Assembly (NCBI GenBank): GCA_964057225.1
Contig: OZ059895.1
Span: forward strand, 9,114,001 to 9,178,000
Direction of reading: 5' to 3'
Length of the DNA: 64,000 bases
Origin: Auanema rhodensis
Lineage: Eukaryota; Animalia; Nematoda
In this document: positions 50,540 to 59,427 of the stretch, piece after piece
Layout of the letters: the number at the start of each line of letters is the position of its first letter
Position numbering within the stretch: position 1 is the stretch's first letter
Translations under genes and position numbers: made by a program
The notes under the pieces: model-generated
Database searches by the model: none
What the model was told of the DNA's origin: nothing
What the model saw: only the letters and a program-made list of their open reading frames with translations

Positions 50540-54425
<3,886 letters not shown>

Positions 54426-55128
54426 AAGTCTTTGTTTATTTGTTGAGTTTGTGATACACATACCATTTAATTGTTTTCTTATGGATTTATTTCAATGATT
54501 ATAAAATTTTAACGGTTTTATTCTTTAATATAGTTTTTTCTGTTCTACAGTAATTAGGATAAGTTATGGGATTTTGAAAAAAATATTCAATACTAACATT
54601 TCTTTCAAAAAATTGGAGTGCTATTAAAAGGTCCAGCTTTCAATATTTACTCGATTCAGGGTTCTAAATTGTAATAAGTTTGAAGCAATTTCTAAAAGCT
54701 TCTTTTTTTTGTTTTTTTAACCTCATTCTTTTTCTTTAGTCGACCTTTTTTTTTCAATGTAGTCGATGTCGATAAAGTCGATCGTAGACACATCTACACG
54801 TAATTCACCTCTAAAAGAGGTAACTTCTTTAGCAAGTACGCAATATTGTCTTGAGTGTTATTTCAGGATTTTCGTCTCATGTCACTAAAATATTTTTGAT
54901 TTAACGGCACATCTCTGTTTCCTGTCTTCTTTTGTAATTGTGGGAACTCTATATTTTTTATATTTATTGACGTAGATCACAGTTATTGTTTACATTATTA
55001 TTTTTATTAGTATTTATAACAGTTTTTACCATTTTATAAAATCGTTATTTTCTTGAATATTGCATTTATTAAATCTTATTCTGTTTTCAGAAGTTGATAG
55101 AATTTATAGTATATTCTAATAAATAAAG

Positions 55129-56915
55129 ATGGGTAAAGGATATCAAAATTTCATGTCCAAAAAGGACTTCCATCCTAGTGCTTGGTGGAATTTAAAAAGA
55201 GTAAGTGTTTTCTTTGTTTGTTTCGTTTTCATACGATACGTTTGAGGTCTGGGAAGCCGAACAAACTAAAGCACAAAAAGAGAAAAAGGAAGAAGAAATG
55301 AGAGTACAGTATCAGAAAGAACAAGAAATGCTTAATAATAAGTAATTTAACTTGAATATTTCTCATTCACAATTAAATAATAATTTAGAGCTCTTCTTGG
55401 AGATGAAAAAGCTAAGCTAGGTCTTTCTTTTATGTACGAAGCTCCCGCTGGAATGACCAAGAGAGAAGAACCAAAAGTATGTTTTTATATTTTGATGAAA
55501 CCTCATTCATCTTTATTAAGGAAGAACCCAAATTCGAGTGGCAGAGAAAATATCAAGCTCCTCGTGAAGAGTGGGCAAAAAATAATGAATTAATTCAGGA
55601 TCAGCCTTTCGGTATTCAGGTTTGCTTGTTTCAAACTAATATTTTTAACCTGTTTATCCTTCAGGTTCGAAATGTTCGTTGTTGTAAGTGTCATAAATGG
55701 GGTCACTTAAATACAGATAATGAATGTCCCCTATATGGAATGAGTGGCAACTATGATGATGCTGGATGTAAGCTCTATAGTTTTTTTTATGACTAAGTTT
55801 AATATATTCAGATGCAAATAATCCATCCGATTTGTTCAAAGAACTCAAAAAAGGGCCTTTATCGAATAGATTAAAGGAGTAGGTTTTTAAATTAAATTTT
55901 TTTTATGGGTAAGCATTTTCAGCAATGATGAAGAATGGGTGGATAAAGCTCAGTTAGCAGAAGATATGAAAGAGAGTCACGGTCTCAAATTAAAGGGAGC
56001 AGTACTCGATGGTTAGTTCAGTCTTACGGATATTGAAACAATTGGTTTTATTGTTATTTAGGTATTAGAGAAGATCAACAAGTATCGAATTTGAAAGGAC
56101 CTGTTAGTGAGGCAGAACAAATGCGGTTATTTTTATCAACATTAAGTGATAAAGAAAAGAAGAAATTAATGAAGTTCGTTATTTTTTATCTTTATTTATT
56201 AATGCATGATTCAATTTAAGAAAACTAATGGGAGGAGACTCGTCCGAAAAAAAGAAAAAGAAGTCAAAAAACAATAAAAAAAGTAAAAAGGAGAAAAGAG
56301 TGAAGGCTCAGAGCTCTTCAGGTTGAATTTATCAGTTAGAATAAGACTAAACAATTTATATTCAGATTCCGACTCCTCCAGTTCTGATGATGAACGGGAC
56401 AAGAAGAAAAATCATAAAGAGGAGCGTTATGAACGACGAAGCAGAAATGATTCAGAAACAGATCATTCTAGACATAATAAAGAGCAGACGAGAAAGCAAC
56501 GAAGATATGATTCGGATCAGGATAGCGAAGAAGAGCTTAATGATAACAGAAAAAGTGAAAGACGGCATGAAAATCGCCGGGAAGACCGACGTAATGACCG
56601 ACGTGATGACCGACGTGATGACCGACGTGATGATCGCCGGGATGACCGACGTAATGACCGACGCGATGATAGACGTGACGACCGACGTGATGATAGACGT
56701 GATGATAGACGCGATGATAGACGCGATGATAGACGCGACGATAGACGCGACGATAGACGCGACGATAGACGTGATGATAAACGCGACGATAGACGTGACG
56801 AACATAGAAGAGATGGACGACATAGCGATGGTAAAAAAGATGATCATTATAGGTATGCTTTAATAAGAAGTTCATAGAATAACGTGAATGTTTCAGCGGA
56901 CACAGGAGAAGATAA
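55129..56915 (+). CDS. cir-1: CIR1/CWC25-family splicing factor/corepressor with a long RD-repeat tail
   Basis: [53 protein letters not shown] and zinc knuckle [22 protein letters not shown]. Confidence 0.93.
56575..56810 (+). repeat. 12-bp coding tandem repeat encoding (RRDD)n, ~19 units
   Basis: gatgaccgacgt and gatgatagacgc variants, translating [16 protein letters not shown]... Confidence 0.95.
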
Positions 56916-57084
56916 TCTCACATGTATGTTAATATCCATTCCGTTTGTACATAACTGTATCAATAAATACTTTATGATTGCTTGGATTTATATAAAGTTA
57001 ATGATAACCGTAATTCTGACGCATACTTAACGTATAATGAGTATAAATGTTGGCTTAGGGAGTAGTGTTTCAGTACTTTTCATA

Positions 57085-57321
57085 ATGTCTGATTCGTCTG
57101 GAGGGAAACGACCGTGTTCTAGAGAAAATCAGTTAAAGCTTCAGCTGAATAGTCTTAAGGCAGTAAGCAACCTTGTTAATTTAACAATAAAACCTATCTC
57201 TAAGGAAGAACAAGCTTTGAAGCAGATGTTGATGCATTTAATGAACAGAAAAAGGCAATTACTAATGGAGGGAGAAAGACTTAAAAATCTTGAAGAAAAT
57301 CAAATAAACGATTCTTCTTAA
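57085..57321 (+). CDS. 64-aa coiled-coil microprotein, candidate SNAPC5/SNAP19 homologue
   Basis: TTTCAG acceptor ending at 57073, ATG at 57085, 42-nt GT-AG intron at 57163-57204. Product MSDSSGGKRPCSRENQLKLQLNSLKAEEQALKQMLMHLMNRKRQLLMEGERLKNLEENQINDSS. The gene model is more certain than the homology. Confidence 0.6.
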   Translation: MSDSSGGKRPCSRENQLKLQLNSLKAVSNLVNLTIKPISKEEQALKQMLMHLMNRKRQLLMEGERLKNLEENQINDSS

Positions 57322-58026
57322 AATGTTTCTTCTAAATATTCTCTAATATATTTGAAACATGTACTTTACGGATACCCAAAAACATTTAGCAAGTTGAAGA
57401 AGGTTGCTGATTAAGATTATTTCAAAAAGAAAAATGATCTCTTGTGTATGTTTTCTTTTGTTTATTTAATGTTCCTTCTATATATTATCTGGTTTTGCTC
57501 AATTGTCACATTAATTTCCGGTATTTCAAAATATGATTCTTTGAAGTTTTCTCTCTTTATATTGTACTCTTAATGTAATTGCTGTATATTGTGCTCTCAA
57601 AAATATTTTTCATTCGTTTTCTTCAATTTATAATTATGTTGAAACATATTGACGATTCAGTTTAGTTTGAAGACTAAAAGCTACTATGTTGTTTGTTCCA
57701 TAATAATTTTTATTACAATTACAATTTTTTAAATTAATATTAGAGGAAATCTATAATATTACTTCAAGGAGAAAAGGAAACGTTTTATGTTTCCTAGTCC
57801 CTGTTCTTATTTCAACGTTGTGACACTGAATGGGAATAAGTCGTTTAATCTCCTAGAAAGCCATGCTTACAGTAAGCATTGCGCTATTATAAGATTTGGA
57901 AACAAATATAGGAACTTGATTACCTTCATAAGGCAATACTATTCAAAAGAAAAATTTCGGAAACATTCTATACAAATAAATTTCTTTGGCACAATCAGTA
58001 ACATAATGAGCACGATAGTAGACTAA

Positions 58027-59024
58027 TTAGATGAGTTCACGTGAATCACGAGCAGGTAGTTGAGGACGAGGCTCCATTTCTTCCTCAATTTTTCCTGGTC
58101 TTGCTGCAATACGAGTCCTTTGAAGCTCTAAGAAAGGCGATTCAATAACTATAATTATAAATATAGTTTTATACTTAAACATGATATCTACTTGTATAAG
58201 GAGTTGGCATATGGTTGGCTGCAAGGTGTGAGTTATCTGGTGTTATTTCTAATGAAGGAGATCGAAAAGAGGCAGATGTATCACGTAGGAATAAAACTTA
58301 AATAGTGAACGTTATTGTACAGAAACAGAATATATGAGTTCAAACCTTGTCCCTGATTTGGCACAAACGATGGCTCACTGGACATCATGGCAATATGGGC
58401 GATTTGGGATTGAACCCTCATTTCTAAAGTAATATAGCCTAAACATCTAAAAATTTAAGTTACTTTCTAAAAATTCTTCATCATTGGCTTCGCTCGGAGG
58501 TGTGGATGGCGCATTAGGCTTGGGAGCGATGAGCATATTGTCAGAATTAGATCCTCTTTCGTCTTTTGGAATTAAAACAGGTAATACTGATTTGGAACTA
58601 CTCGTATCTATAGGAACTGAAGGATTAGGTATAGACATTGACGATGCACTGTTAACGAGATCAGGAACTTCAGAATCCAATATTGATGATGCTAATATTG
58701 GAGTCATTACATTAGCAGCTGAAGCAATAGCAGCATTTCTCTGAAAAGTAAAGTTATACATTCGTTCTTATTGCTTAACTTACTTGATTTTGACGAATAG
58801 TTAGTTCTTTTGTGTATTTTTCAATTTCTTTTGAGCGTTTATTGCCATCTTCTAAAATTTTCTGGAGTTGTTCATAGGCTGAATCAAATAGTTAGATATG
58901 TACTGAAAACTTACTTACATTCTAAACTTGCATCATCATAAGATTTGCCAAATCCAAAAATTGAAATCGATACAATACCGATTGGACAACAAAACAAGCA
59001 AAAAATGAAGAAATTGCCAACCAT
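58027..59024 (-). CDS. Hypothetical protein, probably secreted, low-complexity
   Basis: Hydrophobic N-terminus MVGNFFIFCLFCCPIGIVSISIFG. Six exons join in frame via GT-AG introns to ...PQLPARDSRELI*. Confidence 0.65.
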
Positions 59025-59427
59025 GTTTATAGCAAAGAGATAAGTTTCGGTTAGCAGTCTACTTAGAAGCCAAGCAAGTCAAGCAAATAACTTGAACACT
59101 TAAAATGGTTAGATCGCCACTAATCCTCAAGGATCAATGGGCGGAGTTCGAGTGTAACCGGATTCTGATTCAAAGTTCTTTTGATATATTGCAACAATTG
59201 TATTTTTGCCAGAATATGCAAATCTGTTAAATCTGGCATTGGTCATTTGAAATTATTTTCATCCAAATATAGTTAGCATGGTCACTTTATTTTGTACAAA
59301 TAAAAGTAATAATATATAATACTATTAATAATTTCAAATGAATTAAATTAAAATAATAATACAAATATTTGATAAAATAAAGATATTTTTATAATTATAA
59401 TACTGTTTTATAAAAACAAGTTCCTTC

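Follow-up and report, generated by a model that had tools for sequence, protein, structure and literature searches.

The window analysed here, a 64,000-nucleotide stretch of Auanema rhodensis DNA, is AT-rich and nematode-like around 57 kb (G+C = 33%), with introns of 40–50 nt. A small two-exon gene lies there on the forward strand, directly behind cir-1. The features of both genes, numbered from the first letter of the window, are the following:

55091–56915, + strand: cir-1, a CIR N-terminal domain protein of about 443 aa, presumed first gene of a putative operon
56962–56967, + strand: AATAAA, probable cir-1 poly(A) signal read from the sequence, 106 nt before the next acceptor
57037–57321, + strand: 94-aa ORF of the ORF list
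57037–57084, + strand: 5′ part of the 94-aa ORF, outside the mRNA when the ORF list is compared with the RNA contigs
57068–57073, + strand: TTTCAG, 3′ splice acceptor (trans-splice type) of the small gene, from the sequence
57074–57084, + strand: 5′ UTR of the small gene, 11 nt, from sequence and RNA contigs
57085–57162, + strand: coding exon 1, 26 codons, Ser/Gly/basic N-terminus leading into the zipper helix (L17, L24)
57163–57204, + strand: intron, 42 nt, phase 0, GTAAGC...TAAG, with the RNA joint 57162->57205 in four of four runs
57205–57321, + strand: coding exon 2, 38 codons plus TAA, remaining helix (L31, L38, L45, L52) and polar tail
57322–57709, + strand: 3′ UTR of the small gene, about 390 nt, with contig ends at 57596–57709

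Two other genes flank this pair. Upstream of cir-1, at 53424–53909, the final exon of a gene is typical of the alanyl-tRNA synthetase C-terminal part (DHHA1-type). On the minus strand, a convergent expressed gene with five verified introns of 40–49 nt occupies 57794–59088, and its 3′ end lies about 85–100 nt from that of the small gene.

The RNA evidence consists of contigs assembled from four runs of one 2019 study. These runs are recorded only as 'RNA?', but the fifteen clean GT..AG or CT..AC joints in their contigs identify them as RNA. Each run contains one cir-1 contig extending from 55085 to 56757 with nine GT..AG joints, which remove introns of 44–50 nt; translation of the cir-1 exons shows a CCHC knuckle besides the CIR N-terminal motif. 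The cir-1 acceptor is located at 55090/55091 and the ATG at 55129. At their 5′ end the contigs carry the loose letters TTACCCAAG and then TTTGAG over the genomic TTTCAG, which together are the last 15 letters of SL1. Since the contig start is thus the 3′ end of SL1 (TTACCCAAG plus one mismatch), cir-1 is trans-spliced to SL1 at 55091. In the C-terminal part of cir-1 (window 56590–56800) there is a long, near-perfect DDRR/DRRN-type repeat run with 12-nt units, and in four of four runs the contigs end inside it, at 56757. The last cir-1 intron (56853–56896) and the stop codon (56913–56915), which lie beyond this end, are sequence predictions, and the stretch 56772–57059 is covered by no RNA contig in the four runs. 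In three runs, a separate contig enters the cir-1 intron 55879–55922 at position 55885, coming from 10–80 unrelated letters that end in ...CATGCTTTTTTCAA; it may represent an alternative exon, the other allele or an assembly chimera.

The small gene is transcribed and spliced. A preliminary description of this DNA had proposed from the letters that the 94-aa ORF hides an in-frame intron of 42 nt; the expected GT..AG joint, 57162->57205, which skips these 42 nucleotides, is found in one contig of each of the four runs. In every one of these contigs 91 letters stand 5′ of the joint, which places their common start at 57072, 2 nt ahead of the exon; no small-gene contig in any run extends farther upstream. 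The ATG at 57037, which opens the 94-aa ORF, therefore falls outside the mRNA. The alternative start that had been preferred, ATG 57085, which follows the TTTCAG by 11 nt, agrees with these contigs: it is the first AUG of the mRNA, has an A at −3, and opens a coding sequence of 64 codons (57085–57162 plus 57205–57321). Towards the 3′ side the contigs run to 57596–57681, with an additional loose end at 57709, and the 3′ UTR includes an AATAAT at 57702–57707. Word depth across the four runs is 23–40 over the small gene, as compared to 40–54 over cir-1. A search of Rfam returned zero families at this locus. In three runs a contig follows the 3′ UTR up to 57709 and then departs from it, with 255 further letters that begin CAAGTTGTTTC...; these letters are absent from the window, and with no GT at the break this is not a normal splice.

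The position of the small gene behind cir-1 had been described as operon-like, and the arrangement bears this out. Both genes are on the same strand, the upstream one does encode a CIR N-terminal domain, ATG 57085 lies 169 nt past the predicted cir-1 stop, and the distance from the AATAAA to the acceptor is 106 nt. In C. elegans-type operons, downstream genes are separated from the upstream gene by a spacer of about 100 nt and are trans-spliced to SL2 or to a mixture of spliced leaders. Strand, spacing, the TTTCAG acceptor, the 11-nt 5′ UTR and a contig depth of the same order as that of cir-1 are all as in such genes; what differs is that the leader of the small gene is deduced from a contig break, and that the gene could have its own promoter in the 170-nt spacer. 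As to this break, SL1 ends in ...GAG, SL2 in ...AAG and the genomic acceptor is CAG, the common suffix being only AG. If several leaders share just these two letters, a de Bruijn assembly is expected to break 2 nt before the exon. The break at 57072 in four of four runs is thus consistent with the use of several trans-spliced leaders, the usual situation for a downstream gene of an operon, and we infer that the small gene is trans-spliced and forms an operon with cir-1.

Use of the acceptor at 57073 in cis, from a cir-1 donor, would account for part of the same data. On this reading, what follows 57073 would serve cir-1 as an alternative 3′ exon, with the small frame inside a 3′ UTR. Since AG is the ending of the last cir-1 exon too, a break at 57072 is compatible with such a junction, and the uncovered stretch 56772–57059 suits this reading as well. 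However, the four runs contain zero joints from cir-1 donors to 57074, and the exon, read in the cir-1 frame, stops after six codons; furthermore, the recurrence of the break in each of the four assemblies suggests that several upstream sequences compete there, as spliced leaders would. We therefore regard cis-splicing from cir-1 as very improbable and retain trans-splicing of a downstream cistron.

The predicted product is 64 aa long: its N-terminus is short and basic, its middle part a single long helix, and its tail short and polar. Leucines at 17, 24, 31, 38, 45 and 52 form six consecutive heptads that run across the exon junction. Its helix propensity is evident from the AlphaFold2 model of exon 2 alone, a single helix spanning exon residues 2–37 with a mean pLDDT of 94. 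The intron is in frame and free of stops; if retained, it would add 14 residues, exactly two heptads, which keeps the phase of the zipper but introduces a proline. A bZIP reading of the product was ruled out, the N-x7-R basic region being missing.

These properties bear on whether the frame is used at all. The transcript could be real and the 64-codon frame untranslated or non-functional, the RNA being young or non-coding and riding on cir-1 read-through. Zero relatives were found in any database searched, the hydrophobic periodicity of the product is not significant by itself, and for a frame of this size the 3′ UTR is long, all of which would suit such an RNA. On the other hand, the frame opens at the first AUG, with 11 nt of 5′ UTR before it, and combines six in-phase heptad leucines with a confidently predicted helix; in simulated sequence of matched composition, ATG-ORFs reaching the 78 codons of the genomic reading occur with P about 0.011. 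In addition, the intron inside the frame is efficiently removed, and the steady level of the transcript is similar to that of cir-1. A non-coding or non-functional frame is, in our judgement, improbable, though less so than the cis-spliced cir-1 exon. We infer instead that the frame is translated and that its product pairs through the zipper; the locus very likely encodes a real small zipper protein.

As to the nature of this protein, the preliminary description proposed the SNAPc subunit SNAPC5/SNAP19. SNAPC5 stabilises SNAPc and is dispensable for its basal activity. Residues 1–51 of human SNAPC5 form one helix of the wing-2 four-helix bundle, whose other helices are provided by SNAPC1 (162–234) and SNAPC4 (81–125) and which contacts TFIIB (10.1101/2022.09.21.508861; PMC11696126). 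The SNAPc of C. elegans, fly and Arabidopsis has been described as a three-subunit complex (PMC9652321), SNAPC5 is listed as common to honey bee and vertebrates and lost from other ecdysozoans (PMC2656531), and recent immunoprecipitation work on SNPC-4 and SNPC-1 names no small subunit (10.64898/2026.08.31.747621). Our literature search found no paper on nematode SNAPC5 or on the neighbours of cir-1.

Family and relative searches covered the single exons and the unspliced readings of 78 and 94 aa, and a match that depends on the joined peptide could have escaped them. With the Pfam model of SNAPC5, PF15497 (gathering score 23.6 bits), no match at E<=10 was obtained for exon 1, exon 2 or either unspliced reading. 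As controls, residues 1–31 and 22–60 of orang-utan SNAPC5 scored 39 bits each, as compared to 13 bits for one bonefish exon of 25 aa; because SNAPC5 pieces of the same size are detected, the exon-by-exon test has power. Other Pfam matches of the exons and of the 78- and 94-aa readings (Spo16_C, SatRNA_48 and UL11, with E of 0.05–0.2) were discarded as noise. Comparison with 23 tetrapod SNAPC5 sequences by hhalign gave a probability of 0.8–1.1% over an aligned stretch of 9 columns only (worm 17–25 against SNAPC5 22–30), and BLASTP of the single exons against Pongo SNAPC5 gave nothing useful.

The wider searches returned no relatives either. A word-index search of 5.8 billion proteins, run with short queries split by the intron, found zero relatives, and an exhaustive phmmer search of 1.84 billion representatives yielded a single match, a 2130-aa repeat protein (P0001), which was rejected, its score being the sum of seven weak repeats that lie partly on intron-coded letters. 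Human SNAPC5 chains were not matched by phmmer in the PDB; the matches that did appear there, a designed TPR protein (via intron-coded letters) and an antibody framework, are noise. In the JGI metagenome scan 555 patterns were matched and 0 confirmed. The protein searches, with the same intron-split short queries, recovered no nematode relatives. Searches for invertebrate or plant SNAPC5 sequences returned vertebrates only, so that no broad SNAPC5 family profile was available.

SNAPC5, too, is a leucine zipper (leucines 8, 15, 22, 29 and 36), and consequently any offset that is a multiple of seven aligns leucines with leucines. We scored the two worm exons against SNAPC5 cell by cell on common diagonals, ungapped. 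The human stretch used for the original comparison was accurate: a 58-residue bait designed from it was 100% identical to primate SNAPC5 entries, and only the database proteins that it returned were used in the comparisons. In the register first proposed, with worm L24 opposite SNAPC5 L8, a gapless alignment does exist, with 10 identities in 43 columns, but its score of 37 is within the range of heptad-preserving shuffles, which reach a mean best score of 41–42 against SNAPC5. It had also been stated that this register emerges only once the intron is removed; this is half true, the zipper phase being kept either way. Taken with the exonwise PF15497 result and the hhalign probability of about 1%, a register at the coiled-coil background leaves the proposed SNAPC5/SNAP19 membership unsupported.

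The best register is a different one. It places worm L17 opposite SNAPC5 L22, with 10 identities in 16 positions, a score of 47 and the common motif QLNxLKxEExALxxM, which crosses the exon junction. The score of 47 has P = 0.005 against plain shuffles and P = 0.20–0.25 against heptad-preserving shuffles, whereas the 10/16 identities have P = 1.5e-4 and P = 0.006–0.009, respectively, by a 16-residue-window identity metric chosen post hoc, after the match was seen. The residues that match do not vary between tetrapods and fish, and positions 23, 31, 34, 37 and 38, where the worm differs, are variable ones. On the other hand, in this local register the worm helix is shifted: the invariant SNAPC5 residues 1–21 have no helical worm partner, and about 20 residues of the worm helix project beyond that of SNAPC5. 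Hence, the two good registers disagree, the globally sensible one being at chance and the local one better.

The intron offers a further point of comparison. In vertebrate SNAPC5, an intron lies after K30 (codon 30) in phase 0, as seen at a bonefish locus (L001). The worm intron, also in phase 0, falls after the residue aligned with SNAPC5 position 31 in the best register, one codon further on and thus not at an identical position. As evidence of descent this is near-neutral, given that a slide by one codon is about as improbable under descent as the coincidence is by chance. Many vertebrate SNAPC5 'isoforms' in the databases diverge right after ...LNRLK; these (L001 3001–3759; P0137, P0138, P0151, P0187, P0188, P0190, P0197) are products of intron retention or exon skipping that diverge after K30, and the valine following K30 in most of them corresponds to the GTN of the retained intron.

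An Atlas feature search provides a language-model lead. With the whole reading, clusters bearing PF15497 took ranks 1 and 2 with a score of 0.80, and with exon 2 alone one of these clusters was again at rank 1, with a score of 0.79. PF15497 is carried by 11–19% of the members of these clusters, most of them hypothetical plant proteins with lengths of 57 and 89 aa. One in three shuffled proteins attains a score near 0.8, and the search gave a low recognition value. That the nearest named Atlas family is the very one proposed earlier is notable, but amounts to a lead at a noise-level score.

The product could, then, be the nematode orthologue of SNAPC5/SNAP19, adding the fourth helix to a wing-2 bundle in which SNPC-1 supplies two and SNPC-4 one. 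In that role it would stabilise SNAPc and touch TFIIB at snRNA, SL RNA and piRNA promoters. The identities of the L17 = L22 register on vertebrate-invariant positions, significant by the post hoc metric against full and heptad-preserving shuffles alike, speak for it, as do the phase-0 intron one codon past that of vertebrates and the first ranks in the Atlas search. The build is also compatible: a tiny product (64 aa, as compared to 80–102 aa) with leucines every seven residues along one long N-terminal helix, in agreement with residues 1–51 of SNAPC5 (10.1101/2022.09.21.508861). One long helix in a small protein is nevertheless a generic feature rather than one specific to SNAPC5, and the worm product differs from the vertebrate proteins in having neither the INQT box nor the acidic poly-Glu tail. 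Against the orthology also stand the exons without a PF15497 match, where fish and primate pieces of similar size are recovered, the hhalign probability, a score-based shuffle test at background with an identity metric chosen post hoc, the disagreement of the registers, the one-codon shift of the intron, the Atlas scores attained by shuffled proteins and the three-subunit description of SNAPc in C. elegans and fly (PMC9652321). Membership of the SNAPC5 family is thus unproven, though not refuted; it has three weak leads behind it and, on balance, we consider it unlikely, although clearly less so than a non-coding transcript.

On present evidence, most of the resemblance to SNAPC5 is of the sort expected between any two short leucine zippers with a similar composition. 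The product also resembles generic short leucine-zipper or coiled-coil subunits, such as the small helices of Mediator, BLOC-1 and the kinetochore, in its single amphipathic helix, small size and fast drift; it differs from those families in that none of their Pfam models matches it, and it also has no bZIP-type basic region. The protein is best described, for the time being, as a small zipper subunit that evolves fast and is restricted to its lineage.

Overall, we favour the view that the locus is a genuine, previously uncalled protein-coding mini-gene, most probably the downstream member of a two-gene operon that begins with cir-1, and encoding a small zipper subunit. The pre-mRNA would be cut and polyadenylated after the AATAAA at 56962, and the downstream RNA would be trans-spliced at 57073/57074 and then relieved of its 42-nt intron, so that the first AUG (57085) opens the 64-codon frame. 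The resulting protein would consist of about 16 flexible basic and serine-rich residues, a helix of about 45 residues (L17 to L52) and a short polar/acidic tail. Such a molecule could act only through zipper pairing of its one helix with other helices, in a homo-oligomer or as an extra helix in the bundle of a partner.

The certain part of these results is ordinary but useful: an expressed gene of 64 codons with a verified intron and mRNA start, of a kind that both ORF-based and homology-based annotation miss. More tentatively, rhabditids may keep a strongly diverged SNAPC5, in the form of a 64-residue helix encoded in the cir-1 operon that completes the SNPC-4/SNPC-1 wing-2 bundle; the candidate is small and hence quick to test by tagging, co-immunoprecipitation and knockout. 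If this somewhat unlikely possibility were true, nematode SNAPc, and along with it the machinery that transcribes SL RNA and piRNA genes, would have a fourth, overlooked subunit. The three-subunit view of the complex (PMC9652321) and the loss of SNAPC5 in ecdysozoans other than honey bee (PMC2656531) would both have to be revised, and the small protein would offer a new means of studying SNPC-4 complexes at the promoters of snRNA, spliced-leader and piRNA genes.
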